Of a DNA stretch of 64,000 nt, positions 3,301 through 35,900 are shown in pieces (positions within the stretch are counted from its first letter, which is position 1; the number at the start of each line of letters is the position of its first letter). The translations under genes and the position numbers were made by a program. The stretch is taken from contig OZ004613.1 in NCBI GenBank assembly GCA_963924565.1, positions 23,126,001 to 23,190,000 of the forward strand. Reading direction: 5' to 3'. The notes beneath the pieces are model-generated. The model was given only the letters and a program-made list of their open reading frames with translations. It made no database searches and had not been told where the DNA came from. Source of the stretch: Ascidiella aspersa (taxonomy: Eukaryota).

Positions 3301-6300
3301 CTGATACCAATTTAAGAAAAAAAATATTTTTATCCGGCAAAAAAAGCACACACAAAAGTTTGAAATGTAAATTAAAAAATATTAAGTTGATTGGTAAATT
3401 AATTTTTTAGTACCTTGAAAAAAAACAAAACAACAAAACAATCTCCAATCTGAGAGTTTTCAGTCCTATAAGCTTTTACAATTAAACGTATTAATTTATC
3501 GCATTTGCGCACTATACAGCCAGCACATGGAAATCACAAACCCAAATTCGGTTGTTTGCATTTCTACGGCAAGAGCAAGAGAAAAAGCGCCAGAAATTTT
3601 CGCAGCAGCGGTAATTAGTTCTGCCCTGGGTCGCGAACAAAGACCATGGTCGGGGGGAGAGGGGAAATACTTTAAAGCTTGGTCACGCTTTCGGGAAAGG
3701 TTAATTTGTACGGAAACTCGCTTCAACGCAAGGTAAACGACACGCAAGCGATCGTACGAAGTGAGCTGCTGTCGTTTCGGGCGATTTTTCGACCAAACCT
3801 AAGTTTATATAAACAAACCCCCCGAAATTAAGTTTGCTAATCTCAGAAGGTTCTTCGTGCATTTTACATTTTTATTTCATACTACATTTTTTATCTAAGT
3901 TAGGGCAAAACCAGTATAAAGAGGCAAAAAACAGTTATTTTAGATTATAGAAACAAATTAAGGAAATCGAACAAACTGCATAGCTTAAGCATTATGTAGT
4001 AAATTTTCATGCAAAAATGCTAAATCAAAGTTGTATTTTGATGTTGTATTTGTTTTATTTTGCACGTTAAACGTGACGGCAATTTGTGGTGATATTGTAC
4101 TTTTTATAGAAGCGTGATGTAAGGCCCTTTTGTCGAAATTTAATTGACATGTAATTTTGTTTTCGCACAAACAATTTCATGACTTTATTCCCGTTACTAA
4201 CAATATTTTTGACGATTTATGCCTCCCAAGTTTGCCGAAAAAGGAATACAAAATAAAAAAAAAGTATTTTTATTTTTTAAAGATTTAAAAAAATATTTAA
4301 TGTCACTGTCGGTATGCTTGTTGTTAGGGTTAATGGATTATTTTGATTTTTTTAAACGTGTGGCTGTGGCCTCACGAACATTTTTTACGGAAATTTGTCA
4401 AGCCGCTGATTGACCCTGGTGCAGCTCAATAGCGCAACCTACCGGATATTTGTATTTTAGTTGCAATACTACTCTTGGACATGTATATTTTTTTAATTGT
4501 TTTGTTAAAACAGAATTGGTCGTAAAAATATTTACTTTCCTAAAATTGGAACATCGGTTTAATTTATTATTTTATCGGAAGGCTTCAGACAGTGTTGTAA
4601 ACATGTAATTTGCAACATACCTCCGTTCCAAGTCTATAAAGAAAACTATATTCTCATTCTGTCTTTTTAAGTAAACTATTTCGAAAGGTGTGAATCACAA
4701 TGCAATTTCAATGTTGCTAACATACTATTGAATCGCGCAATTCCTAGCCTGCGTCACAAATCAAATATAAAAAAAATCTATCAGTAAACACGGTTCGTCT
4801 AATTTTATTGACAAACAATGCAATTCGTGTTGGTTTCATAATTCTAAAGCGAGATATTCTGTATTATTAAATACTATTCCGAAACCAGGAAATGCTTAGT
4901 GTTTTTACTATTAAAATGACCAGTATAAATTGGATGCAATATAAATTCAACTCATTCGAATAATCACTATGCGACATTTAGTACCGTCACATAACAATTT
5001 TTTTACTTTATTATTTAAGAGCGATAAGGGCGATGATATTCAACTACATTAAATCATATTGCCTTAAAATGAAATCCAGTTGTGTAAAGTTGTTCGAAGA
5101 ATGTAAAAACCGTGGTAATATATTCGTCGTTTTAAACATTTTCACCCGACAATTCAGTTAGGTGTCGCTCAAGAACAAAACTTGAAAAAAAATAATTTTA
5201 CCTTTACCTTCTGTTTTCTGTTTGTCGATGTGTGTTTTGTTGCTAGGTAATGCCAGCTTCAACGCAATATTTTTCATAATGTGTGATACCGACCACCAGT
5301 ATTAATTGAGCGAATCAAGTTTGCCACTGATTTTTTTGGTAATTTCGCAAAATAACGCTATTGTATCAGAAATAGGGATGTAGCCAAGCATCCTAGACTT
5401 ATTTACATCATCCATGAAAAAACTAGTAAGATTATGGTTTTTACATATTCATTTCTCGTTTTGTCACAGTGTTTGCTTAGCTGAAACTGTTTGATTTAAC
5501 AAAAAAATTGCGCTGCGCATTTCTAGTATTTTTTATTCTAGTGATGCCATATTTTGCGATTTTACACGGAGGTGTGTTACTTGTTTTTATCTAACGACAG
5601 TATGACGCTTTCGTGTCTTTCAGACTAACATTTTTGATGAACTTTCTCTAGTTGAACGAATATGGTTGTACGAAAACGCTTTAAAATGCCATACTTACAA
5701 AACAAATGAGCAGTCGCGTATCAATAATGGCTAGCCAAAGTGAGAAATTTCATACCGAGAACAAATATTGTTATAATGAGCAAGAGTATTTTAAGGCTGA
5801 ATTATTAACACTCCGGAAATAATAAAAAAATTCTAAAAATATATGAACGGTGTACAGTTAACTCACATAAAGATTTTGCCTGTTTTTGCTCGTGATTATT
5901 TTCATTGTCTAATCCAGGGGGGAACTTATAGTTACGCGGACTAATAAAATAAAATTTGGTTTGCGTGGACTATGGTGGACGTGAAGTCTTCGCAGATGAC
6001 GCCATAATAGAAGTAGACTGAGATGACGCCATTTTACATGCATACTAAATGAACCTGCGTTTTCCGGTCGTGCTTCCGTGCAAATATTCAATTTAAATGG
6101 AGTCTAAATGCACTCAAAACTATGTTTTTTTATCAATCGCCCTTTTTAAAAAAAAATCATTTTTAAAATCATTCCCCAAGGAGTCCATGGCCCCAGTTTA
6201 AGAACCTCTGGTTTAATCTAATGTATAGGTTTATTGATGAACTCGGAAAACGTAAGACTTTTAAACAATTTGAAATGATGAAAGCGAAGAAGAAGTAAAC

Positions 6301-6444
6301 TGTAGTGCGCAAACGGCCTGATCGTGCAGCGCAAGTGCAATGTGCATACACTGGTAAGCAGGATTATAATTTCGCTTGGAATTCTCATATGTTCAAGAGC
6401 AGACAATTTTAACGTTAAAACCACTAACGCTTTTCCGTTGGTTC

Positions 6445-6957
6445 CAGGGGTGGGGAAGCTGTGGGTCGCGAGCCATATATCGCTGTTTATGTTACGCCAT
6501 ATGACTCTTTTGATAAAATTATCTTGCTTACAAATAAATCTAAGCTCTCATTTATCAGCATGATCTGAATAAAACTGCTCAAAGTGATGGCCGCTTTCCA
6601 ACTTTTTTGTGCCTTTTTTATTACAGATAGTAGCATCATTATTTGGCGATTTTCGCGAATTTTATTACTGTAAGTATTTTCAGGAGTATTATCCCGTTAA
6701 AAAAATCTCTTTACACCCAAAAGGCCTTTCCGACGGAATTCTGTAATTGAAGTTTTGCAAACACAACTAATTCTTTTTTCGCGCTTAGTATGTCCTGTCT
6801 TTTAAATGAAAACAAAATAAATGGCCCAGCTCAAATTACTATAATTTTCCAACTATAACTATAGATGTAATAAAAATATTATATGGCTCTCAAGGTAAAA
6901 CAACTAAGTATATTTGGCTTTTATGGCTCCCTTTGCTAAACAGGTTCCCGACCCCTG
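6445..6957. mobile_element. hAT-type MITE, older
   Basis: TIRs CAGGGGTGGGGAAGCTG / CAGGTTCCCGACCCCTG; degenerate TSD GTTGGTTC/GTTTGTAC; GAGCCA/TGGCTC subterminal motifs. Confidence 0.75.
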
Positions 6958-7758
6958 GTTTGTACAATGTAAAGAGAGTCATGTCGATGATGCCAAATGT
7001 GCAAGTCCACAAATTGTAGTTGGCTTGGAGATTTAGCCCTGCATACACGGCCCTTTGCTGTTAAAATCATTTTTCTGAAGTCCTGCAAAAGCTAAAGGTT
7101 TTTTCACAGTTGGGGTTTAGAACGATTTTTTACACAACACTTAAAATGTACAACTCAGAGAGAAACACATAGAGAAAAGTTGCGCAAGTTTGCAAATGTA
7201 ACTGAACAAATAAAAAATCCGCCTTATGCCTTTCAACTAAGGCTTACAGCTTAACGAACCGCCGCAAAATGTCCTCGACAACTTATCCAACTTAATTTGT
7301 TTAAATACCCGATACAAACCATTTAAATAAAATTAAAATAGGCAGTAGTGTAGATAATTACAAAAGGACAACCAACAATAACAGATGTTGTAAAGCTTAC
7401 GAGTCATGCAACCAAACGTGTATCAGTAAATGTTGACAACGGGTCGGGGCATCCGATTAGCAACAGGCCGTATTTAAAACATATATACGCTACTTTTTGA
7501 GGGAAAGTTAACGTTTTTAAAAATCAGCGATAAAACGGCAATATGCAGCGCGACTAAGAGCGGAAATAAAATGGTGACGATCACTTGCAGCTGCTAAAAC
7601 TGGAAAAAACAAAAATAGGAGCGGTGCTGGAACCGTTGCCGTCACGGTCCGGTCAAACGCGGAGCGGCGAACGCGGAAAACTTTGCGGAATGAGTGAAAT
7701 GCGGAAAAACGATAGAAGGAGAAACGCTAACGGACTTGGTTCTTGTCGAGGGTCGAAT

Positions 7759-7841
7759 CTAGGAGAGGAAAAAGGACCAGGCGTGGCACTTGCGCTTGCA
7801 AAGGTGGCAGAATCGCGCGATCATGAAGCGGCTTCTGTTGA
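7759..7841 (-). CDS. Secreted cysteine-rich cationic peptide precursor, terminal coding exon (VNRSRFMIARFCHLCKRKCHAWSFFLS*)
   Basis: Very strong acceptor (ctcttttttgttttgtttttatggcag). Phase 1 matches exon 15375-15222 and supplies three Cys that mirror the first three. Followed by T-rich, UTR-like sequence. Confidence 0.7.
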
Positions 7842-10800
7842 CTGCCATAAAAACAAAACAAAAAAGAGTTGTAGTTATGGAACATTAAACATACTGGTTG
7901 TGCTACCAAATTTATATGGGTAAAAAAACTTAAATAAAACCACCAAAAACTACCACTAAAACTATTCAACACTTTAGAAGAAAAACGTAATCCTGTTCGA
8001 GAAAGCTAAATGTGTTTGTTTGCTTAAGTTTTCAATAAGGGCTTTTTCTAGCTTTGTACGTTGAACGTTTAAACTGAACGAAACAATTGATGATGCCCCT
8101 TAAAGTTTTAGCTTTACTTGGTTCTATGCTCTTCTGGGCAGTGATAAGCACAAAGAAACCTGCTGTCAATTGTTTCCTATTTCATAGCAATACCACAACG
8201 CAAATCATTTGTTAAAAAGACTATAAAGGTTTTTTTTATCATTTTTCCCCCTTTTATTATTTTAACAAAGAACTAAGAATAAACTCGCGTTTAAGGCCAC
8301 GAACTTCCTGTCAAAATTAAGAGCTTGTTGTAGCGATGAAGTTTGTAACTCTACAGTTCTGAACAGCGGGACGGACGCCCTTATCTCTCAACACCAGCAA
8401 AGCTATTCCGGGCCAATATTTATACGAGTGTCAACAGCCTACGCATCAAAAGGCCACGACTTCTGACGGGCCCGATTTCGGTTGTATGGATTATGCGCAT
8501 TAATGCACACATAATGTTAGTTTTAACTTCTAACTTTCTTAAGTAATAAAAAAAGCGAAAGACACTCGAGCAATTTTTTTGCACGAACATTTGCTTGTTA
8601 ACGAGGAATTTAGTTAGGATTCTATAAACTTTGTGTTTACCTATGGGGTGGCGTTCATTTTTATGGAAGAGACAAATCAAACATTTTCAATGAAAATAAT
8701 TGCACACCTTCATTTGAGGGATTTTTTGTTAACAACAGTGATTGACTCACCAAACTTCGTTTATAAAAAAAAAGAAAAGTTAAAATATTATCAAAAATTA
8801 ACATCGTGTTGGCTGAAAAATTAACCAATGAGCCAGATCTGGCAAAATAAAATAGACAAAAACTATATGTTGTAAAACTACTTTATAATGTAGATAAACA
8901 GCAGGTTTACTTTTTATATAGATTTACAAAAAGCCACAAAACTGCAACACGCTTGATTTTGTCAACCTCGAGATTAAGAAATGTAGAAAGTCAAGATTGA
9001 AAAGCATAGCGCAAGAGATTATCATTATTCAGCACCCTGATTCAATAAAACGCCAATGTTGTCATAACACAAGCGCCAGGTGAGTCCTCAAAGGGCCTTG
9101 GCCTGTTTTGCTTTGTCGTATCATCAATATGTCTCGACATTTTGTGTATTTAAGCCTATGCGATAGAGCCACCGTAAGACCGCCACCCGTAGTCAAGGCT
9201 ATGGGCCAAACGCTTGCGACAATAAGCAAAAATACACAAAATTCTTTCATATGAAAGCTTTGAGGGCTCTATGGCGCTTTGAAGCTATTAGCAGTTTTGA
9301 GGCAAAGCCTTTATAAACGGGGAATCCGCGCAGCACCAGACTCTATTCAATTTGCCACTGGGCTCAGTTACTTAGAACATTCATGACATATTAGTTGGTG
9401 CGTATATTGCAATTTAATCATCGATCTTCGAAGATGAAATAAACCCGACCTCCCAAGGAGCAATTTTATTATGCCGATGGGCCGGTAAATACCAAAGCCT
9501 GCCACCTACGACTTAGCGAAGGTTTGCGGCGAGACTGGCGCCATGTTTGTTGGCCTTTGTTTATTTTCACACATCGAACCGCACTTGACGTTCATAAAAT
9601 ATGTATTTTTTATCATGCTTTTGAAAAAGTATATACCTTTAATTTGTCCAATTCGCCAGGCGCTAAAATTGTAGCTGAGTGTTTTAAAAAGCTTCTATAG
9701 AATTAAGCCTAGAGCAACAACAGCGAATTCGACAGAGCGGCAAAAATATTTGCGAAATCATCACTTCAATATAAATCGAACGATGAAATGCTTTTATGAA
9801 CTGGCGATGCGTGTAAAGGCCTTTTATTCAAGAAAAAAATTTACAGTTGCGCGCTTTTGTTAACCACCATTCGGGTACACCCCTTAGGCTTAAAACTTAT
9901 AATTTATAACCAATAGTTTAAAACCGAAACTCGTTAAAAAAGCATTGATGTGTTCCCAGTCGGTAGAGCTAAAGCTTTTATAATTATCATTAAAAGTGTC
10001 TGAAAGTTAATATCTATAACACAACTTTACAGGAACTTAGTTACAATTTTCATGTTACTTGACGTTACCTCATTAGTGTTCTGTAAAATTGACGTTTGAT
10101 CAAAAATTAAACTGTATTTTTTTGTAATTCGCGACACATAAAACAGTTTTAAATGTTAGATTCGGATGTTGGTTACGTACAAGATAGCTAACGGGCGTGT
10201 TAATTGATTTTTGTGACTTTGTGCTAATTGATTTTTGGCGTTGTAAATTGAAAACCAAAACTTTAAATTGCCTCATATGTTATATTAGTCGGGGAGCAAT
10301 TTGTCTTCTTTAGTAAGCTAACTATACCTTTGGGTAAAAGTACAAAAGGAGTGAGACAAAAATATCCTTACAGGAACGCATATAGTTTTTGAGATAACGT
10401 CATAAAGTTATATTGTAACATGACGTCCCAAAACAATCGCGTACAACCTTGTAACTGAATTTTCATTGAAATTTTTTTTATTGAAGGTAGCGATAAAGCA
10501 TAATCGCAAATTTTAGCTTGGTGAAACAATGTTTTACTGGAATGCCATTCCGGCGGTTACTCAAAAAACTTAAGATAATTTTTCACCAATTTGACAAAGA
10601 GAGTGCGGTTACATCAAAATTACTTGTTTCAACATAGTTATTTAGCTATGCTAACAAAATAGCATTTCTTGCTCAATATTGCCGCCATTTGACCTGACTT
10701 GTCGTATTTCGCTTGGCGAGCATTCTCAACGCCGCAAGTGCATTGTTGGTAGGTTGCCAGTTTTAAAATTTGTTTTGCGACCGTTTACTTTTAGTCTAGA

Positions 10801-12517
10801 ACGAATATTTGTTTTAAACTGTTCAAAACAAGAGAAGAAAATTAAAATTCAACTTTTAGATATCCAAGCAAATCCGTGCCCTTAACTCATTCCTAAAATG
10901 GTTTGTTGTTTAGTTTGGCAGGCGACCGACACTTGAAACTGGACTTTACTATTTTCGATGCTCGGTTTACGGTTTCTTGTTTGCCGTTCACTTAGGGTGG
11001 CCGGGATGGTTGCTTATTGTACACCGCACAGCACTTAAGAGGTTGCTGCGTGCCAAAACTACTCGCAGCAAAGCGAAAAAACACTTGCTTCCTCATTTGC
11101 TGTTTACTTCCGTGTTTGTTTGGTATCGAGGCGTTCTGCATGTTTAAGAGATGTGCAGTAAACAGCCTAAATCGGCAAAGGATAATGTCCGAAGCAGAAT
11201 ATAGGCCTAACCAAACATTTTTTTACTCAGTTTTTCAATTATATTTTCAGTGCAGATTTATCAGATTAATCGTCTCGAAATATTGATTTAAATGTCTTAA
11301 ATTAATGTCGTATATCCGTCAAAAATTTGCAGAGCGGCTTAATTCTCAGGTCAACTGTAACGCATTAACGCCGACCTACGGGCCGAGTTGTACTTTGCTA
11401 CTTGGAATCTGCGCAAGATTTAAAATTAAAATTATTCTTGCATATTGAACGGACATTTTTGCCAATCTACTTTGATCTGAAGAGAGCCGAACAACTTTCA
11501 ATCGCCATCGACCGAATTTGTCGAGGGTGCGTGTATGCATTCTGGACATTTACTTGCATCCATATTGTTTATATTACTTTGGTGGAAACTTTGTAAACTT
11601 TCCTGAACAAATTGCAGTTTAATCAGGTCGATTTCCATCGATTATGTGATACTGTACGTGTGTCATAATTTACTATGACGATCATTATTTAAAAACAAAG
11701 CGAAAATTTTGGGCTAAGCGTGGTAGAATAAATATCTTCTGATTTATGAATGAATTACAAATTGACTGTGGTATATTTTGACGGTAGAAATATTCTTTAT
11801 AGTGGGCCTACTTAATGTTTTTTACTCATTTTTCTAAACTATACTTCACAGGTTTATTAGACTAATTGTCTTAAATTATGGATTGAAAGAACCAACAGGA
11901 AGTGAAACGTAACGTTTTGGTTGCTTGCTTAACTTTACATATTTACAGTACGGCACTTTAACATATTTACAGTATTAACATCTATTTTAAAGAGAAGTTT
12001 TGGTTATGTTCGCATGTCTTCTCAAAAATGACAAACGGTTGCAACCGATAAGGCAATTTTGTTTTGAACCCTCCAACCTAACGCTATTTGCCTCTCGCGA
12101 ATCGAAAAACAACCCCAGGTAAACACTTACTGTTAAAGGGGGCCAAGCAGTGAACAACCAGCAGCCTTAAAGCGTTATCCATGTCGTTGACCGCTTAATA
12201 AATATTATGTCGCGATTGCGGTGCACCGTAAAACGAATAAGGGTTGGTATTGGTCGCACGATGAACCAACAGGCTTGTTTGAACTGCGGCGCCCGTTTAA
12301 CCAACGCAAACGCGAGCGGTTTTGGTTCGCGCGACCGCAAAACGAAGCTGGAATGACGCGGGGGGTAAAAACTATACTTTCCCATATTTTCTGGGGTGAT
12401 TTTTGTGTTCACTAATTTAGGACGAGTTGTTTAGCAAAGCAGGGCCGACCGTAATTCATCTAAAAACCTGATAACTTAGTGTCTGTTCTGTTTTGTTTCA
12501 CAGTTTTACCTCTAGAC

Positions 12518-12864
12518 AGTGTTGCAAACAAGTCATTGTTTAAGTAACTTAAGTCCCAGTGATGGATTTTTAAATAAATAAGTCAAGTCCCAGTCAAGTC
12601 ATAATTGAAATAACTCATTTACATTCCTGGTCAAGTACTTGTCATAAAAAATTAAACGTTAATAACTCAACTAGAAAATAGTAAAAAACGCAACCTATAG
12701 CAAGAAAATTGTTTTATGTGCAAAACTTAGGATAAATAACCCAATTGTATAAATAAATGCTTGGTGAAAACGCTTTTTTAACCAAAATGATTTGCCCAAA
12801 AGACTGAAAACTATAACTTTAGTGCACCTAAGTCAAGTCATCTACTTAAGTCTTTTAACACTTG
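12518..12864 (+). repeat. Dispersed repeat family C (AAGTC-rich, CAGTGTTG end, probably a MITE)
   Basis: AAAAACGCAAC..TTATGTGCA..GATAAATAACCCAA recurs in reverse orientation at ~46070-46135. Confidence 0.65.
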
Positions 12865-13561
12865 CCAAAACCACTCCTGCATGACATTAACATGGTAATA
12901 ACCCCTTTCCTGAACTAGTGTTTTTAACCCTTAATGGTGACGTGGCTAGAATATTTGATTTCCAACCTGACGCGCATCTTTGCGGTCTTTAAAAACACCC
13001 TTCATACAAAGTGTAAAAAGTACCCTAAGTGTATTTACCATTAAATTTTTACGCAACACTGTACGACGTTCAAAGTCCGACAGCCCCATAAAAGCTAAAC
13101 TGGCAAAGGTGAGTTACTGCATTGCGTGTTTCGGGTGTGTCAAAATATGGCCTTGTCCAAAACCCACCCAGGGTGACATGACGCCGCATTTATCTTTGAG
13201 TGCGGATTTCAAGACTAAACCTGATAAACTGCAAGTTGTGGTGGAAAACATTTCGATACCACAACGAAAGAAACAAATAAGAGGGCTCGCGTATCTTTCA
13301 ACGGCAGAATAATGGACTGCCTCTAACGGAATGCATTACGCCGGCTCACATATATCTTCATAAGTTCGTATAGTTAAATTAAAAACAATCAGTTTTTAAA
13401 AACTGGATAATAGTATCGTTATAGTCGACGTGTCAAACACTTTTTAAAACACTAGGAAATCATTAATCCTATTAGCAGTGAACAATAGTGAGCATCATAC
13501 AGGGATTATAGGCGATAGAATAATATGTAAAACTCTCACTACATCAAAACTTAAACCAAAA

Positions 13562-13720
13562 GCTATACAGGCTCAATTGGTAGATCGACGGTCCCGGCTT
13601 GACCGGAGGTCGTGAGTTAGAACCTCACTGCAGGCTAGTTGTTTTTCTAGCTGCCCTCCGCTTGCATCTTTGATCGACAGATTCGGTGAGTGTGCAATGG
13701 CTTTCGGTGAACTAATGATA
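13562..13720 (+). mobile_element. tRNA-derived SINE, copy 1 (in the intron of the peptide gene)
   Basis: Aligns to 27126-27290 (GACGGTCCCGGCTTGACCGGAGGT...AACCTCACTGCAGGC...GCTTGCATC..GATCGACAGATT). Confidence 0.8.
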
Positions 13721-15221
13721 CGTAAGCTGTAATCGTTGGTCAAAACGCAGCTTCAGAAGGGCTAGATTTCAGTGGTTAACACACATATGTGTGTGCATGT
13801 TTCATGGAATACATCCAAACTATTTGTGAAAAGACATTTCATCATAACCAATGCTTTTCAAAGCAGAATTTAGGCGTGGGCGACGGCCGACGGGGCATTG
13901 GTATGTTCTCTCTAATTGCGCGTATTTTCTGTTGTGATATATTATCGGTTCGGTGCCTTTACAAACAGCATGTACATGTTAAACTTGCGTGCAAACTAAG
14001 TGCATTCTTGTGGTAAAAAACGCGACCGAAGATTTTCCATGTGCTTGGACCGTTACCAACGCAAGGTTACGCCCTTAATCATTCAGACAGTAAAACTTCG
14101 GTGGGTTACGATTGATTCCAGTCCTAAATCACTGTCGAGAGATCGTTAAAAAGTACGACCTATTTGATCTGGTTGTTTGCGGATTTGTTTAAACTTGCTT
14201 AAGCGCGTTGAGGCTTTGGGTCTTTAGATATGATGACATGCCAGAAACAATGCACAGACGCAAAAGATTAAGCCTTCTGAAACGCGCCTGGCGGATTTAA
14301 AATCGATTACGCTTGATGTGGTCTGTCCCAATCGTCACGTTAAAAAAAAAACTTGATCGGTAAACAAGCTTGAGCACTAACATATTTAGAAAACATAATT
14401 TAGGAATGATGCTTTACTATGTTTTATATACAAGTCCTATCTACACATTATTGAAATTTCCGTTTTAATATAGCTAACTTGTAAAACATTGTTGTAATCT
14501 ACGTGGAACCTAATTTGTTACACAGCAAATTACCACTCATTTAAAATAAGTTTACCAGCGTTTTAAAAAAAACGTTGAAATATGTCCATCCACAAAACGT
14601 GTAATATAAGCAAAGACTATCAAAGACAGGGGGTGCTGTGTAAGCCAAAGGTTTGCAGAGGACTTGTGTATTACTTTTGTGGGGTCACAGAACGTCTGTA
14701 TGCCTTAAACCTATAAAACGAGAATGCCCTCGTTTGCTCTAAACCATTTAAAGAAAACGGCATTGATTACCAATTAGTTGCGTCAATATTTAGAAAGCCT
14801 ATAATGCGTTTTTCTTCGATCACACAGTTGGCGCACTGAGCGCATTTCCCTTTGTTTCTTGATGCGTTGCCAAAGCAATGAAGCGCAACTCCTCAACCAG
14901 GAAAGGAGGAATTAGCTCTTTGGATTCAATACAAAAGCGCGTGTAATTTTTAATATGAATTGACTTTTGGTGGCTTATAAGCCTTTCCGTGCTGTCCTAT
15001 CGATTTTTAAAAGACGGAAGCGTCTGTCGCTCAAGCGCAGTTATGACAAATGACACGTATGCAGTCCATTGCTGTCTTGGCGATCTTTTTAAAGTCGCCA
15101 TGTCGATATACTCGAAGTTTCAGCGAGAAGCGCTATCTAATTGCCCTGCGCGACTTAATATTCATGAGGCTTACGTGTCCTGTCGCAAGCGTGAGAAATC
15201 GATAAACAGGAATGCGCTTAC

Positions 15222-15375
15222 CGTCACGTCTGAAACGGTGCATCTGACAGCGGCGACAGTAGCGCTGGCAGTACACCTGTCTTCGGTCCAAGGCCAAGCT
15301 CTCGTAGCCAGCTGTGAAAAGGTCGACGGTCAGTATGACCGCTAGGAGAAGCAGCATGCAGCGTTTGGAGTCCAT
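15222..15375 (-). CDS. Secreted cysteine-rich cationic peptide precursor, coding exon 1 (MDSKRCMLLLLAVILTVDLFTAGYESLALDRRQVYCQRYCRRCQMHRFRRD)
   Basis: A-rich context caaaaaATG, hydrophobic signal-like core, strong donor G|GTAAGC (phase 1), upstream acceptor tttttgttttcag at 15478-15490. Confidence 0.75.
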
Positions 15376-16569
15376 TTTTTGTCAGGTTTTCGCGCGTGAT
15401 TCACTTGTCCAACAGTGTAATGCGCTTTGCAAGGCTTTAGTTAGCTTTTACGTAAAAATATCACGGTTTACTTAAGACTGAAAACAAAAATCCAACAAGT
15501 TAATAAACAGTCGGCTATTACTATAAGATGAGTGATAGTATTAAAGCACTTTTTCCTTATATTACAATGCTAAGAGACTTAAAGATAAAAAAAATTGAAA
15601 CCAACCTACGTTAGTTTATATTTTAAACATTTCTGCCAGTGGTTCTTAACTTTATTTAGTGTCGCTACTCATAAGAAGTATTTCACGGATTTAAACATAG
15701 CCTATATTTAAAATTTGTGACGTTATAACCAGCAATTAAATAACAAAAAAGTACAAAATAATTTACTTCACATAAGCATAAACATAAAACATGTGGTATT
15801 TTATTTTGTTTTGTAGGTAAAATATAGCATTCGATATCGTTACCAAAATTTACCATCTAAAAAAATCAAACTACCCCATCGTGGGTAAATACCACGAACT
15901 ACTGATTTTTTTACAGTAATTATAGTGGCGCTTTAAGCCAGGGGTTAGCCAATGTAATTCATCCGGCCCGCCGCCATCCTCTCCCCGCCGCCAACTAGGC
16001 ACGAGTCAATTTTAAATACTTTTTGACTATTTTACCTCAGTTCAGGCAAAAAATTTTCGCGTCGCCGTGCGATTTGTTTACGATTTAATGCTCTCTTTTC
16101 AACTATAGATTACGCCGTGGAAGGCTGTCAAGTGTGTCGCGGACAAACGGAAAACGTATTTACAAATATTAGACATATTATATTTTTTAACATTTTTGTT
16201 ATTTTATTTTTATTTTCAGCAATGTAATAAAATATTGCAAGAATTTAAAATAAATGCCGGTATACCAAAATAAAATCGCGCCTTGCTCGCCAGTTCAGCC
16301 CTGGCCTAAAAGGGTTAACAACAATGATCTAGATTAAGTATTAATGTTAACGCGTTTTCTCAAAGTTTGATAACATTTTTCATTAGTAGTATGGCTGACG
16401 ACCTGAGGACTAGGATTTAAACCAAACAAACTCTTTTTTTCGCGCTTTGCGCTAACAGTTTATTGCCTCCTTAAATGTAATTAAACGCTTTTAGGTGCAA
16501 AAAAAGATGCGAGTCTGCCTGGTTCACAATAGTTCTAACATTTTTTAACACAATTCTTAGTTAACTTTT

Positions 16570-25739: not shown

Positions 25740-26611
25740 TTTCTAAATCCAGATAGTTTCCATCCGAAACACATCTTCAGATCAATAGTCTACAGTCAAG
25801 CACTACGATACATCCGGATCTGTTCCGAAACCGAAGACAGAGCAGCACAACTAAAAAAGCTTGCATTGACGTTTGAGAATTTGAATTATAGAAAAAACTT
25901 AGTGCAAAGCCAGATCACCAAAGCCAGGATGAGCAACAGAGAAGACCTCCTGACGCCCACAACCAAAAAGGACAACAACCGGACCCCCATAGTTCTAACG
26001 TACAATCCGCGGCTCCAACACCTGAACCGCATAATCGCCGACCTGCAGCCAATACTGGATAACAATCCTAAAACCGCTTCGATATTTCCTTTAAAGCCAC
26101 TTATAAGTTATCGGCAACCGCGCAACATGCGCAACATAGTCGTCTCCAGCAAATTTAAAGACGAAAAGCAAAACTTTGGTACCCTGCCCTGCGGGAAAAG
26201 TCGTTGTGAACTGTGCTCACATATCAATAGAAGTCACATCATTGAAGGACCGAACGGCAGCAGCGTTGAAGTCGGCGGCAATTACAACTGCGATACCACC
26301 AATGCGGTTTACGCAATCACATGCGTAAAATGTCCCCGAACCATATACATTGGAGAAACTGGACAAACAATCAGAAAGCGCATGAATGGACATAAAAGTG
26401 ACATAAAGCATGGACATATGGAGAAACCGGTCGGCGAACATTTTAACCAAGGATCACACAGTGTAAAAGACCTTAGAGTTTCGGTGATCAAAAAAGTAAG
26501 TAACGGCACCCAAGCGAGGCTCACAGTCGAACAAAACATAATAAAAAAGTTCGATGCCATTAATGTGGGGCTCAATCGGATTTGGGCTTTATGTCACACT
26601 ACACCTCATAG
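25740..26611 (+). pseudogene. Truncated PLE ORF with a probable 1-nt deletion near 26578
   Basis: No RT catalytic core. Restoring one G gives GLNRDLGFMSHYTS*, a PLE-like C-terminus, in place of the hydrophobic read-through of ORF 25866..26900. Confidence 0.8.
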
Positions 26612-26786
26612 CAGGCTGTACTACACCCATCGTACCTTGAAGCGCAGGCATCGTAGCATAATTGTTTTTGCGTCAGTAACACGCTTTTGCGAGCATGTGC
26701 CTGTGGATATGTTAGACGTCACCATTCTTATCGCCTTTTACTTGCGCCTGTGCTTTTACGTGCATTTTAATTGTTTTCATTTATAC

Positions 26787-26826
26787 TTTGACCTGATGAA
26801 GCACGGTTGTGCGAAAGCTTGTCGAG
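26787..26826 (+). ncRNA. Minimal type I hammerhead ribozyme in the PLE pLTR
   Basis: TTTGAC-CTGATGA-A-GCAC(GGTT)GTGC-GAAA-GCTT-GTCGAG: intact core, 4-bp stem II, palindromic short stem III (AAGCTT), stem I TTGAC/GTCGA. Confidence 0.85.
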
Positions 26827-27125
26827 AATCAAATACAATTTGTCTTTATACAGTGCCACCTGATTTCTCTGTTTCTAACAAGGTATTCGTTAACATTTGA
26901 TGCCATGATGGTTGATGCAAACACATTGCGTATGAAAGACACACACACATATGTGTTTAATAACAACTGTGATCTAGCCCCTCGGAAGCTGCTTTATGAC
27001 CAACGTTTACGGCTTCCGTATCAATAGTCCGTATCAAACTGATGATCCCCCAATGTGTAGTTGCTTGTACTAACAGAATGTGCAAGTATTGGCGTATGGT
27101 TGTTTCTCGACTCGCTCCTCTCTGA

Positions 27126-29597: not shown

Positions 29598-30791
29598 GTT
29601 TATGTTGACGGAACAAATTAGTGTATTCGCAAAACTGAAAACCGTCAAAAGACGAATTTCGGCCTAAAATCGTTGAAACAATTTGCGTTAATAAAGTGAT
29701 GGCAAATGACATTTTTAGGCATTCAACGAGAAACTGTTCTGTCCGGGGTGAATCGTGCAACAGCGGCGTATTTAAAATTGGTCTATCAATAGAGAAAATT
29801 GCAATACGCGTGCGGGCAGACAATGAGCTGTCCTTATTATAAGGCACGTATATTCAACCAAACTATACTACCATTGACAGTCTTTTCTCGATCGTCCGTT
29901 TTAATAATTAAACGCCGCATTAGGCTGTGACGTCGGGGTTATAGTACAGTCGTTTTGGCGTTCGTTCGGATTTAGAACGGCATTTGTTTGCGTCTCACCA
30001 AAGGCGCAAAGGCAATTTGCGCACATGATAGGGCCCGGTGCATTATTCATGCGGTTATCGCGCCTCAAGTTATTTGCGAACGGAACAGCCGGGTGAAAAT
30101 GGCTTCCTGTTGTGTAATACATCGGCGTTTACAACAAAACATCGCTCTGCTGCAAGATGTGTTGAACATCCCACGCTCTGAAAATGCCAGCTGCACCATA
30201 AGGCAAAAATGGAAATGTCTTTCACGAAGCATTCGTTTGATATTTCTGCGACAAGTAGTTTTACTTTTTTATTTGGTCCCTTTCTATTATTTTGGAATTT
30301 TCCATCTGTCTTATCACACCCAAATTTAAGTTTGATCATAAAGCATAACTGAATTTTTAAACCTAAATCAAAGAACCTTGATTGTCTTGGGAGTTTATAA
30401 AACTTCCCTCCTAACAACTGTTTTTCTTCAAAGTTAACATTAACACAAAAACAATTTTGCCGAATATCTTCATATCAAACACAATGATACGGCTACCGTT
30501 AATCATATTTTTTTTTAACTTTAAAGGGCTTGTGACATATGTAACCTTGGGATACATCTCCTAAATAATTAAGCACATCAACAAGTAGGAAAAACACGAC
30601 GTTCAGCAAATGAGAAAAGATTAGTTTGAGATTATCAACTAAAATATGTTAAATGTGATTGCATAACCCTAATGGTAAGTTAAAATGAATACGTTATACT
30701 CTATGTATATGGTTTGGCGTGTATGCAAATGTAAAAGATCTGATTGCATTTTGGGCCCAGTGACCTTCGAAATATCCCACATCCTATAGTG

Positions 30792-31069
30792 CAGTAGTTT
30801 TCAACCGGGGTGCCATTTCTAATGCTCAAGGGTGCCGAGAGATATTTTAGAATTTTTAAGAAGCTGATTCTCGCTCAACTTTTACAGCTTTTTGTAAAGA
30901 TTAAAGTGGATTAAATCCAAATATACATTCCTACGTTGTATAGAGTTTACGTGTGTTGTTCCAGTTCCGTTTATTGTGACATTCTAGTGAATTACCTAAA
31001 AAAAATCTCTCCGCAATCTACTTGTTATTACTGAGGGATGCCGCTAGCCATAAAAGGTTGGCAACACTG
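30792..31069 (+). mobile_element. hAT-type MITE, family A copy 1
   Basis: CAGTAGTTTTCAACCGGGGTGCC...AAAAGGTTGGCAACACTG; near-identical flanks (c/t)TATAGTG; aligns to 55586-55847. Confidence 0.8.
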
Positions 31070-31819
31070 CTTATAGTGTGTTGGTCTCCACTGGTTAGGG
31101 TTTCCCCAACGGATGCAATAATGAAGTTTTGACTGAGACGTCATATCACGCTATTGGCAACACGTGACGTGACATTTCTGACGAATTTCCAATAACTTTG
31201 TTTGCAATAACGTAGGACAGCGAAAACTCGACACATGCGGTTTAATTGAAAAAGCACTGGACAAGCAACCATAAGGTATTATATGTATTGCTTCATTTAG
31301 TATGTGTGCCTTTGAGCTTGTATGGTCTAAATTTTTGGCTGCTTTATCCGATAGGGACATCACCAGATTTTGTAATGATGCATTTTTATTGATTAAAATA
31401 GTAATGTGAATTTTTGAAATGAAAATAGGCAATAGGTGTAAGCGTATTACCGAAATAGTTCTTTGTGCGACCTTTGAAATATTTGAATATTTATTTTCAC
31501 ACAAAATGTTTCTCTAGTTGTCGGATCTGTTTTCAACAGCTTCGCATTAAGTAAATGTCACCGTACTTTAGATAAGGCCTAATTGAAAGCATATAGCTGT
31601 GAGATAGTTATCTTGCCCGTTCGAAAGAATATCTGCCATTTATTCTTACAAATCTTAAAAATTTAAGATGATCGCTTCGCAAAGAACTTAACAGGGATCT
31701 ATGTGAAATTAATTGCCCATCGAACAGTGTCGGTATAGAATCAAACTGTATCAGTTAATTCCACAGCGAAGAAACGGTTTAGTATAGTTAATGTAGTAAC
31801 TTAATAAAGAAATTCTTTA

Positions 31820-32260
31820 GTGGTTTGGAATGCAAAACCGCTAAGCACGATCTCCCTGCGTGCGATTCCCAGGCGACGTTTGGGTCCGAATCGATATAAG
31901 TTATGTAAAGTTTCGATAGGGCAACGCAGCAGTTTCCGAGGCCTCAATGGCTGTCAAAAATGTGACGTCCATGATTTTCCGCCAACACGCAGGCTCGCCC
32001 GAGCCGAAAAGCGAAAAATCTTGGAAATTCTCAGCCGGCCCTCATGCCAAAGCCGGTTATCCACGACCGACGATTGTGTGTGGGTCGAGCGATTGTTTCT
32101 CATCCGTTTCCTTTCCCACAACAGAGCGCTGGGAGCCGCGTCGCTCGGCAGGCTTGCTTGCTGTTCGCTGCGCCGCCTAAGAACCATTCCATATGGAGGT
32201 GGCCCGCTTTAAATTGCTCATGTATAAGGGCTGTTTGCAGTTAGTCTTTTAGGCTAACGC
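31820..32260 (+). promoter_or_regulatory. Putative promoter of the PHEX-like gene (GC-rich block with TATA-like TATAAGGG near 32223)
   Basis: GC/CpG-rich block 0.6-1 kb upstream of the first coding exon. Confidence 0.4.
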
Positions 32261-32877
32261 TGGTACTTCACATTTTTGGATTCTTTCTCGCAAGCTTAGA
32301 AACAGTAAAGTGTATTTATAACGATGGCTCCCTCTCAGCTGCAGTTTTAGACTGAAGACAGTTCTTTAAGCGAAAGTCTTCGCTATTGTGCTGTACCGTA
32401 AACATTTGAATTGGCCAGAGCTAGAATAGTTTATTATTTTATGACAGAAGAAACGGGCTTTTGTTACAACAGCTTATTGAATATAAGTTAAAAGTTCTTT
32501 ACGATGGGCATGCTCTCTGTTTATTTGAGTACTGTGCCCCTACGTTTCTTAAATATAGTTATAAGTTTGTCACATAAATATCCTTGACAAAATTTCCATA
32601 TATTCCCAATAGGCAAGCCATAAAATTAGCATTATAAAACGGGGCAATCGCTAAAAGATGCACAAAATGTTACGCGTTCCATTTACATTTTTGTGTGCTT
32701 TTAACGGGAAAGCGACATCCTAAACTGTCATTGAATCTGCCCGCGTTACAACCGTTTCTAAAAACACAATATCAGAAAAAAAATCTATGTATATATATAT
32801 ATACGGTAAAGTCGGTGCATATCGTGAGTTATAGTTACTAATAAGTATGTGTCGTGTTTTTTCAGCGTCCGTTCAAT

Positions 32878-32997
32878 ATGAGAGTTTGTTGGTTGCTAGC
32901 GTTGCTTTGCTTTAGTTGCGCAACAGCATTGGACACGAACGTTCTGGATGAATACGACCTCGAAGTTCAGGATGACGCGTCTATCGAGGATGAGTTG
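32878..32997 (+). CDS. PHEX-like coding exon 1: signal peptide [17 protein letters not shown] plus start of acidic region ([23 protein letters not shown])
   Basis: Acceptor ttttttcag ends at 32865, ATG at 32878, donor gtaagt at 32998. Phase 0 matches the next exon. Confidence 0.8.
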
Positions 32998-35900
32998 GTA
33001 AGTCTTTGGTAAGACGAGTTCGTAAATCGACATTTGTCTGCAACATGTATAATACTATAAACCAGAGGTGGGCAAAATTTTCTAGTCGCGGGCCAAAACC
33101 AAACCCAGAAAGGTCTCTGTGGGCCGTTAAATGTTAACTGTATAGACTTAACGCATCTTATTATAACCGCAAAGACAATAGATCAGGGATAAAACCAGGG
33201 TATTCTGCTATTTACACTCGATAGACGAACGAAATTTACGCAAAGCGCAAAACAGATTTGCTTTTTCGTAGTTAAATAGCAAAGAATATATGAGGAATGG
33301 TCTCGTTCCCAGTTTGTGAAATAGGGCCGGATAATTTGCGTTGGCGGGCCGTAAGTTTGCGGGCCGTAAGTTTGCGGGCCGTAAGAAACCGTCATCGCGC
33401 AATGATTTTTGACGACGTTAACATTAGTCGAACACGAAGTTATTCGACGTTTTTTTGAGGCAGTACTGACAACATACAGGCCAATGATTGTGAAGTTTTT
33501 TAGCCTGTGGCACACATAGGAAATTAAACAAATTGCGGCTCACTTTCTACAAACCTTTACAATCATAACTTAAAATAACACTTAACACGAAAAGCGATCA
33601 GGTCAATTTACGTTAATATTAATAACAGTAAAATGATGAATAGTGAGCAATAAATCTGGCATGTTTGTCGGCATGCTTAGGCCTATGTGCAACACAAAGA
33701 TTTTTTCATGATCATGTAGGTTTTGCGGTACATTTGAAAAGGTCTCTCGAGGCACACTGAATTCCTGCCATAGGCGCGTAACAGTTTACGGCTCTCCAAT
33801 AACAGTGTATTTATGGAAATGTTTCTTGGATAAAAATCAAAATTTGATTTGGATGAAATATAACTGAACGAGAATTTTATAAAACTCACAATATATTTTT
33901 CAAGTTTTATATGTTTAATACTAATATTCAAGTTAATAAAATTCAACAGATCAATGTGTTCAGGTTACCGATTGTTAGTCATTTAAGTCTCTGCAGTTTA
34001 TAAAGAAGTTTAGAACTTTAGTTAGTTTATTTGTTTAGGGGTAAACTTAAAAACTTAAGGGGTAAACATGCTGAACGATTCCTTTTAAGCTATTCAATGT
34101 ACGCCTTGCGTTGTTAATATATTACCGTATGTCAGATAATTGACTTATGTAGGAAGCTGGCGTTTCCGTTAGTGTGGGTTACCTAGACTCGCCTGCTGGT
34201 TTGCTAACGTCTTACGCCATTGTTTTTTTATAATGAGTAAATTTTTGTTGTAGGGGGCGGAATTGTTCAAAACGTATGACAAAAATAATCCTAAATATTT
34301 TGCATAAATTTTTACCGAAATATGAGTTAAGTACATATTAATTCCACTCAACTTTCTTATTGCTGAATCCTGACAAATAACTGATTATACAAGTCTGGGT
34401 GTGTTGCGCAGCTTAGAGAATCACTTCCACCATCTGTTTCCTTCCCATCAGACAGGCCACTTGTTTGTTTTCCTATAACGACATACTTTATATCTTTCTT
34501 TACACTTTTCAACGCTCTTCACAAACCTTTTGGTAAAATGCTTACTATTTTTAACTACGAAAATGTCGTATATATTCTGTGTTGCGAATAGCTTGAATTG
34601 ATTGTTGTCGATCGACAGAATGCCGAAATGGCGACAATATCGGACGAAGACATGGCCGGTGCCCGTTTGGATACGACGAGCAGCGACGCGGAAGACGTCC
34701 TACTGGACAGCGCCTTATCGGAGGTAGATCAACTCGAACAGCTGCTACACAAACAGCTAAATGACGAAGAAGGTGAAGTGAACAATAGAGAGCAAAAAAA
34801 AGATGATATGGATTTGGAAGATGTGGATCAATCAGACGGAGAACCGGAAGACTTTGGCGGACTTCATTTTATGAAGAAACGGAGTCTCCGCGACTTTTAC
34901 TTAGAAAACGCTATGCGACGGTTCCTGTTGGGACCGCATGGGCACAGCAGTCACGACAACTTTCCTCCAGATATGCAAACAGGTGAGCCTTTTTTCATAC
35001 AAATAACAGCAACATGTCGCGATTGCTTGTGTAAAGCGCATTTTGGTATGTTATAATTCTTGTTATTAGTACAACATATTATTACTTAGCAGTTGTAAAA
35101 TGCGAATCCCATTAATAACACAACATATTTGGAGAGAAATTATGTTTACCAGTACACACAAATAGCTATCTGCTTTAGTAGGATGCCTTACAGGTTATTC
35201 AACCGTGACGTTTGATTGTCCATGTCTGACAAAAATAACTTTTAAATCCGTGGAGTTAAACAGATGACAACTCAAACGAAGAAAATGGCACAAACAAAGT
35301 CTTTGAGCAGACTCTGTCGTACACTACAAGCCAGCGAAACTATGCAACCTATGTAATTACGCAGGCTAACTTGCTCTTACGAAGGTTTCCTTGTACCATA
35401 CTATGGTGATAACTATAACCAGCGATCGCCATTGGGCGTTAAACATCATATTTGTCAAAAGTTTAAGCAACTATTTGTTCCTCAGCCCCTCCAAGAACTA
35501 ACTGCTCAAGCTTCGTAAAACCGACCAAGCACTCAAAATCAACTTGCGGAGTGACCAACACAACCATGCTCGGCTCCATTCACTGGTGCCACGTAACATG
35601 CTCCAAGGGATACAAGTGAGTTTTGATATATGTAAAACACATTCGGTGCGCCACAGCGTACTTAAAAATATTGGCCAACGTGTATTTTGGCGAAGTCATA
35701 TAAAAGTCCTATATGTCGCTAATAGTTTAATTGTTGGCCTTGACAACACTTTTGGTTATTAAGCTCTGATTGGGAGGAAATACAACAATTTTGGAGGGTT
35801 AGTTTTGTTTTTCAAATAAACAAAATGTAAATTAGTCAAAAAACTGTATACCACATATTGTCTCACCGTTACACCTGAATCTCAAAGTATCGTTCTAATT

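Follow-up and report, generated by a model that had tools for sequence, protein, structure and literature searches.

Ascidians depend on innate immunity, and to our knowledge few Cys-rich defence peptides of these animals are known. The ascidian Synoicum turgens produces the antimicrobial peptides turgencin A and B (PMC7024374). Both are cationic and antibacterial, and contain six Cys residues for which a C1-C6/C2-C5/C3-C4 pairing was found experimentally; their genes were not obtained by the isolating authors (PMC7024374). Plant alpha-hairpinins (EcAMP1, MBP-1, MiAMP2, Tk-AMP-X, VhTI, and Luffin P1) are defence peptides, rich in Lys and Arg, that share the motif C-x3-C-(x)n-C-x3-C and form an antiparallel helix-loop-helix held by nested disulfides (PMC4695807). 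Here we describe a gene for a small, very basic peptide with six Cys residues in a stretch of 64,000 nucleotides from the ascidian Ascidiella aspersa (GenBank assembly GCA_963924565.1, contig OZ004613.1, positions 23,126,001 to 23,190,000 of the forward strand). This whole stretch is called the window, and all positions are those of the window unless a contig is named. The gene was proposed in an earlier reading of the DNA letters, the sequence-only reading, which joined two distant open segments of the minus strand and noted that turgencins end in C-x2-C-x3-C, which is correct (PMC7024374).

The locus is a real, expressed orphan gene, very probably with the splicing that had been proposed. 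Its product belongs to a common general class, that of small secreted Cys-rich peptides, and a peptide of the antimicrobial type is plausible. Our reading as a whole is that a single-copy, two-exon gene on the minus strand encodes a secreted, nested-disulfide helical hairpin that acts in host defence. We hold this composite reading tentatively, with the scales close to level, since its parts differ in strength, as discussed below.

Structure and Expression of the Gene

Exon 1 occupies 15375-15222 of the minus strand (154 nt, equal to 51 codons and one base). It opens with ATG and ends with the letters ...CAGACGTGACG at the donor at 15222, where the sequence reads GACG|GTAAGC. Exon 2 occupies 7841-7759 of the same strand, is preceded by tttttatggCAG, and opens at 7841 with TCAACAGAAGCC, so that it reads (G)TC AAC and so on to the stop codon TAG at 7761-7759. 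The two exons are separated by a phase-1 intron of 7,380 nt (7842-15221, minus strand, GTAAGC...tttttatggCAG), which contains one high-copy repeat at about 12500-12900 and another at about 13571-13810; a search for internal tandem or inverted repeats in the intron found none. When 15222 is joined to 7841 by a local script run on the window sequence, the coding sequence (CDS) is 237 nt long and the product has 78 amino acids (aa), which reproduces the precursor of the sequence-only reading. The description of both splice sites as near consensus likewise holds, the acceptor having CAG and 18 pyrimidines of 23 letters in addition to the donor given above.

Transcription of the locus was followed in public sequencing runs. 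The runs were searched with 43 sampled words of 7450-7900, the region of exon 2 and the 3' untranslated region (UTR). Three runs from one study of organism A hold fractions of 0.95 (X1), 0.93 (X2), and 0.84 (X3) of these words, and a run labelled organism B (X4) holds 0.28. Runs X1, X3, and X4, together with raw reads of X5, a stranded RNA-seq run of organism A, were aligned to 9701-15700, which comprises exon 1 and most of the intron. The depth of X1 is about 106-125 in every bin of this interval, which identifies X1 as DNA. X3 behaves as RNA, since its cover is limited to exon 1 and two repeat patches. The X5 reads extend to at least 15461, with a depth of 2.7 over bin 15101-15300, of 8.0 over bin 15301-15500, and of zero within the intron (bins of 9701-15221), the repeats excepted. 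Their first mates lie on the plus strand only, which under the usual stranded protocol indicates RNA of the minus strand. Expression of the gene is almost certain on these data.

The donor at 15222 is used. A contig of X3 (992 nt, depth 38) aligns through its letters 734-981 to 15222-15469, with 11 letters extra past 15469, and the alignment breaks exactly at the predicted GT. The remaining 733 letters of the contig match nothing in 9701-15221, that is, in 5.5 kb of the intron. Splicing of exon 1 to another place had been named as an outcome that would overturn the gene model; no joint from exon 1 into 9701-15221 is found among the joints listed, and the RNA depth there is zero outside the repeats. 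For the acceptor at 7841 the indication is strong. If a run contained 7450-7841 without 7842-7900, about 0.86 of the words of 7450-7900 would be expected in it, and the fraction observed in X3 is the 0.84 given above, whereas the DNA-like runs X1 and X2 have 0.95 and 0.93. X3 thus apparently lacks the intron words next to exon 2. We consider the join of 15222 to 7841 across the 7.4-kb intron very probable. The spliced transcript that the sequence-only reading had predicted is supported by the minus-strand RNA, the contig break at 15222, and the X3 words of 7450-7841; its acceptor is strongly indicated, the letters of the junction themselves not being displayed. The mRNA is at least about 1 kb long.

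The pairing of the two exons was also compared with what chance would give. In a six-frame reading of the window (128,000 positions), each of the two three-Cys motifs has three occurrences, two of them background and the third the target. Exon 1 is followed downstream by 315 phase-1 AG acceptors with an open frame of 15 codons or more, and for 30 of them this frame has at least three Cys. The mirrored six-Cys motif is produced by 7841 alone among these 30, and the pyrimidine count of 7841 is the joint-highest of the group, tied only by 12347. The two coding segments are alike in base composition: their GC content is 0.57 (exon 1) and 0.55 (exon 2; 0.554), vs. 0.375 in the intron and 0.38 in the window. 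Segments as rich in GC make up 0.16% (154-nt windows) and 2.8% (83-nt windows) of 6001-16000. Both exons are single-copy, and exon 2 is unique in the genome (a search of the assembly, 308.6 Mb in 75 contigs). The gene sits in a gene-poor stretch.

The transcript extends beyond the CDS on both sides. The 5' UTR (15376-15478, minus strand) is about 100 nt long and has no upstream ATG; the start context, AAAAAATGG, is a strong Kozak sequence. The 3' UTR (7109-7758, minus strand) is predicted to be at least about 650 nt long, since the 733 contig letters past the donor would extend to about 7109 if joined at 7841. The canonical AATAAA is found near it only at 6666 and 6622, so the 3' end of the mRNA may lie further on than about 7109.

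Some other features of the ends and borders of the exons were seen. A consensus acceptor, ttttgttttcAG, lies at 15479-15490 of the minus strand; it ends at 15479, about 100 nt upstream of the ATG, and the transcript contig ends a few letters away. Many ascidian mRNAs carry spliced leaders. The sequence suggests that the 5' end of the gene could be a trans-splice site at 15479, where the mRNA might gain such a leader. At the other border, the final base of the intron is G, as is the final base of exon 1, and codon 52 (GTC, Val) is identical in the genomic and the spliced frames. An in-frame ATG at 7848-7846 of the minus strand opens a genomic open reading frame (ORF) of 29 aa that spans exon 2; this is probably a coincidence.

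The Predicted Precursor

The spliced mRNA would encode a precursor of 78 aa made of a signal peptide, an acidic propeptide ending in RR, and a mature peptide of 46 aa. The signal peptide (residues 1-23, 15307-15375, minus strand) begins with the basic n-region MDSKR; next comes a hydrophobic core some 15 residues long, in which the 9-residue Kyte-Doolittle mean peaks at 3.49. Cleavage is likely after T-A-G, a site positioned by eye. The short acidic propeptide (residues 24-32, 15280-15306, minus strand) terminates in the dibasic RR at 31-32, and Gln33 is next. A hydrophobic core of this strength followed by a basic processing site is the generic layout of a secreted precursor, and secretion of the peptide is predicted with good confidence. 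RR processing and pyroglutamate formation are general prohormone rules; by analogy, the precursor would be cut at RR and Gln33 would be converted to pyroglutamate.

Sequence variants bear on the coding nature of exon 1. Nine differences from the window in exon 1 are listed as common to the four runs. The three in the CDS, at 15274 (V34), 15310 (A22), and 15319 (L19), are all synonymous third-position changes, and the latter two fall within the signal-peptide stretch. The chance of three synonymous changes out of three is about 0.011, or 0.04 when transitions only are counted. The 5' UTR has six differences in about 95 nt. The X3 contig has one difference beyond those tabulated, which, by the count in X4, would be at 15222-15231 or past 15433, assuming that X3 and X4 have the same haplotype there. 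Divergence of the runs from the assembly in the intron is about 1.5-2.4%, which is ordinary in a highly polymorphic marine invertebrate. All four runs carry the same alternative letters throughout 9701-15700, which indicates that the assembled haplotype differs from that of the sequenced individuals. At each listed site that it covers, X4 agrees in its variants with the runs of organism A, and it may come from the same species under another label; X4 was therefore not counted as evidence of cross-species conservation.

The mature peptide is divided between the exons. The first half (residues 33-51 and the first base of codon 52, 15222-15279, minus strand) contains C36-x3-C40-x2-C43, and the second half (residues 52-78, 7762-7841, minus strand) contains C63-x2-C66-x3-C70 and the hydrophobic tail AWSFFLS. 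A recount agrees exactly with the composition reported in the sequence-only reading, namely 46 aa with 10 Arg, 2 Lys, and 1 Asp, and the motif C-x3-C-x2-C-x19-C-x2-C-x3-C. There are in addition 3 His, five Phe, and one Trp; the charge is about +11, the isoelectric point (pI) 10.8, and the mass 5.9 kDa. The six Cys residues are supplied in threes, at i, i+4, and i+7 by exon 1 and at j, j+3, and j+7 by exon 2, and on a helical wheel the trio of each half falls inside an arc of 60 degrees. The 19-residue linker has its midpoint at V52-N53-R54, which coincides with the position of the intron, so that there is one arm per exon. The linker (...RFRRDVNRSRF...) is extremely basic and holds a furin-type R-X-R-R motif at the exon junction (R47-F-R-R50|D51); a two-chain product through this site is possible, judging from the motif.

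Proposed Fold and Function

From these features we infer the secretion, processing, fold, disulfide pairing, and function of the peptide as follows. In the secretory pathway the mature peptide would fold into an antiparallel helix-loop-helix. The two helices would pair Cys 36-70, 40-66, and 43-63, and the resulting three nested disulfides (C1-C6, C2-C5, C3-C4) would act as staples, which would leave the very cationic loop exposed at the tip of the hairpin. The peptide would then bind anionic microbial surfaces as a host-defence (antimicrobial) peptide. On the spacing of the Cys residues, the nested-disulfide helical hairpin is the fold that we slightly favour. The +11 charge, the five Phe and one Trp, and the hydrophobic tail make a membrane- or surface-active host-defence peptide the most economical function, with a signalling ligand as the main rival; a role in host defence is accordingly put forward as a possibility to be taken seriously. 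A beta-hairpin cystine ladder was also considered, and was rejected on geometry: positions i, i+4, and i+7 do not lie on one face of a strand, i+7 being opposite.

AlphaFold was applied to the halves as single sequences. Each half alone is predicted to be helical, with modest confidence (predicted local distance difference test, pLDDT, 68 and 73.5); the exon 2 half was lengthened for this by three intron-encoded residues, to 30 aa. A complex prediction with the halves as two chains of 30 residues scored 0.02, which counts neither way.

Relatives of the peptide were searched for exon by exon, and most searches could take only exon 1 (51 aa), for reasons of length. Exon 1 had no match among 5.8 billion protein clusters, not even itself, and no usable match in the ESM Atlas. 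A phmmer search of 1.84 billion representatives gave one match, to P0001, a repeat protein of 679 aa; it covers 24 residues in four repeats at 28% identity and was judged spurious. Pfam has no family in either exon, the only hit being to Bee_toxin at the level of the signal peptide (E 1.3), and nothing meaningful was matched in the PDB. The collections searched are without tunicate genomes and transcriptomes, and short spliced eukaryotic genes are poorly represented in them. The genome itself has no detected paralogue of either exon. By its sequence the gene appears to be an orphan with a new Cys framework.

Several points weigh against the reading of the peptide as a defensive hairpin encoded by these two exons. 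The searches gave neither a homologue in any collection nor a paralogue in the genome, so that other species offer no evidence for conservation of the six Cys. The fold predictions, each made from a single sequence, carry little weight and yield generic helices only. The heptad positions that extend the Cys face of helix 1 are occupied by Arg and His, not by hydrophobic residues, which suggests that the 19-residue linker may not pack as helices but form a cationic loop that is exposed. Ligands, toxins, and nucleic-acid binders can likewise carry a high positive charge. At the level of the gene, the run data on 9701-15700 would, strictly, still allow a small additional exon in 7842-9700 or a chimeric contig.

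Alternative Explanations

The alternative that survives best keeps the gene and the peptide, and makes the product a signalling molecule, such as a hormone, a neuropeptide, or a gamete or settlement cue, with a receptor as its target. The precursor has the classic prohormone layout, in which a signal peptide and a short propeptide are followed by the dibasic RR and then by Gln, a candidate pyroglutamate. The R-X-R-R motif in the loop points the same way: in a two-chain variant of this explanation, a cut at R47-F-R-R50|D51 may leave two chains linked by the three disulfides. The gene is single-copy, whereas defence peptides often form expanding families. A charge of +11 together with an aromatic, hydrophobic tail is, however, more typical of membrane-active peptides. 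The peptide has no amidation signal, and no likeness to known ascidian peptide hormone families was detected in Pfam or the PDB. Signalling is unlikely on balance, but it deserves to be kept in mind.

An explanation that concerns the gene model accepts exon 1 and joins it elsewhere, or by way of another exon, so that the mirrored six-Cys peptide becomes an artefact of the choice of partner. There is room for it, in that the junction letters of 15222/7841 are not displayed, the alignment of reads began at 9701 and left 7842-9700 outside, and further phase-1 acceptors are present, for example at 8838. Nevertheless, the words of 7450-7841 occur in the run whose contig breaks at 15222 (X3), and their share is what a boundary at about 7841 would give. 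The candidate at 7841 is joint-highest in pyrimidines among those with at least three Cys, as noted, and its frame matches exon 1 in GC content, in richness in Arg and Cys, and in the mirrored motif. We consider a different join improbable. Two nearer acceptors, 14891 (4 Cys) and 12347, were rejected, as there is no RNA depth at either and no joint to them, or to any other place in 9701-15221, among those listed. An unspliced read-through ORF of 80 aa was rejected as well: bin 14901-15100 has no RNA depth, and in bin 15101-15300 the depth is that expected if cover starts at 15222.

A third explanation is that the peptide is a secreted or vesicular metal-binding (Zn, Cu, V) or redox peptide, vanabin-like in its action, through the CXXC pairs C40-x2-C43 and C63-x2-C66 and nearby His. 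The spacing CX2C-x19-CX2C is that of classical four-Cys metal sites, three His adjoin Cys residues, and the genome has a vanabin cluster, which marks a vanadium-handling lineage. These likenesses are countered by the profile searches, in which Vanabin-2 matches only sites on another contig (C3) and not this locus, and Pfam is blank for both exons. A signal peptide would moreover route the Cys residues to an oxidising compartment, where disulfides are expected. Metal binding is very improbable on these grounds.

That the transcript is real and its ORF untranslated, as in a non-coding RNA with a chance open frame, would suit a short ORF without homologues in a gene-poor region, but is the least credible of the four, given that the start codon of the ORF is the first ATG of the transcript and stands in a strong context, that the signal peptide is well formed, that both coding pieces are GC islands, and that all three coding variants are synonymous, against six variants in the short 5' UTR.

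Intron Repeats and Genome Context

The two repeats in the intron differ in abundance. The element at 13571-13810 (plus strand) resembles a short interspersed nuclear element (SINE) and has a very high copy number: its summed contig depth in the DNA run is about 760,000, where single-copy sequence has about 110. The RNA run shows transcription of the element in both directions, and it begins with motifs like boxes A and B (ggctcaattggtaga ... gagttagaacctcac). A tRNA origin of this element found no confirmation from ARAGORN or Rfam. The second repeat, at about 12500-12900, reaches about 30,000-35,000 in summed depth of the DNA run, and its RNA cover is low and falls on both strands. Its other copies have many internal deletions, of 48-103 nt.

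Elsewhere in the window, a 344-aa open frame at 25866-26900 (plus strand) has a GIY-YIG nuclease domain (Pfam E 1.2e-7), and is possibly part of a Penelope-like retroelement, judging from this domain. Vanabin and cellulose-synthase genes are ascidian hallmarks. A profile search of the genome found a tandem cluster of three Vanabin-2 matches at G000:C3:25475213-25489114, and a 647-aa open frame matching cellulose synthase is present at G000:C5:19610700-19611167. Both finds point to an ascidian genome.

Significance of the Gene

A transcribed gene for a mirrored six-Cys peptide of charge +11 supplies a concrete candidate for synthesis and for antimicrobial or receptor assays, and with it the idea of a three-disulfide helical hairpin in animals can be put to the test. 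It also exemplifies short genes with a long intron that very large protein collections lack. Should the product be merely one orphan secreted peptide among others, a validated gene model would still have been gained.

Comparison with Known Peptides

Vanabins (PF11437) are ascidian-specific vanadium-binding proteins; they are basic, helical, and disulfide-laddered, with Cys intervals of C-x2-5-C that link adjacent helices. They have about 90-120 aa and 18 Cys. The present peptide shares with them the ascidian source, the basic character, the richness in Cys, and the short Cys intervals. The Vanabin-2 profile nevertheless has no match at this locus even at E up to 10, while the same genome has the three sites on contig C3 described above.

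Scorpion kappa-KTx peptides of the kappa-hefutoxin type are cystine-stabilised helical hairpins that block K+ channels as venom components. Like the product proposed here, they are small secreted animal peptides with the pattern C-x3-C...C-x3-C and nested disulfides on two antiparallel helices. They differ from it in having two disulfides, in being far less basic, and in their unrelated sequence.

The alpha-hairpinin motif is present in the outer four Cys of the peptide (36/40 and 66/70), and Arg and Lys account for 12 of its 46 residues. Alpha-hairpinins have two disulfides and shorter loops, come from plants, and are often cut from multimodular or vicilin precursors, in contrast to the six Cys and the ascidian origin here. 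The likeness would be convergent, by analogy of design, with no homology implied.

Turgencins and the present peptide are both from ascidians, are positively charged, and have six non-adjacent Cys, and the first spacing (C-x3-C) and the last two (C-x2-C-x3-C) are the same. The kinship that this likeness might suggest did not stand up to comparison of the rest. The Cys frameworks are C3C4C8C2C3C in turgencin A and C3C4C7C2C3C in turgencin B, vs. C3C2C19C2C3C here, so that the second spacing and the loop length both depart from the turgencin pattern. Turgencins have 35-36 aa, are rich in Lys, and have a pI of 8.3-9.2, whereas the mature peptide described here has 46 aa, is rich in Arg, and has a pI of 10.8. 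The turgencin motif CXMAC is replaced by CQRYC, and the loop is without KKxGG. Turgencins are C-terminally amidated, whereas this precursor ends in ...FFLS-TAG and has no C-terminal Gly donor. No sequence similarity beyond the Cys residues was seen by eye, and at the gene level there is no known turgencin counterpart to set beside this locus. These differences in spacing, loop, motifs, amidation, length, and the use of Arg in place of Lys indicate that the peptide is not a turgencin, and a family relationship between the two is not supported.

What the two have in common is the architecture, since the pairing found in turgencins, in a shape like a helix-loop-helix, is what the mirrored spacing predicts here. 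It is conceivable, although doubtful at present, that the gene founds an undescribed tunicate family of three-rung, disulfide-stapled helical-hairpin peptides, in which each exon encodes one helix with its Cys triad, a phase-1 intron marks the turn, and the product, of charge +11, is a host-defence effector. If so, the turgencin-type C1-C6/C2-C5/C3-C4 architecture would have in it a first example at the level of the gene.

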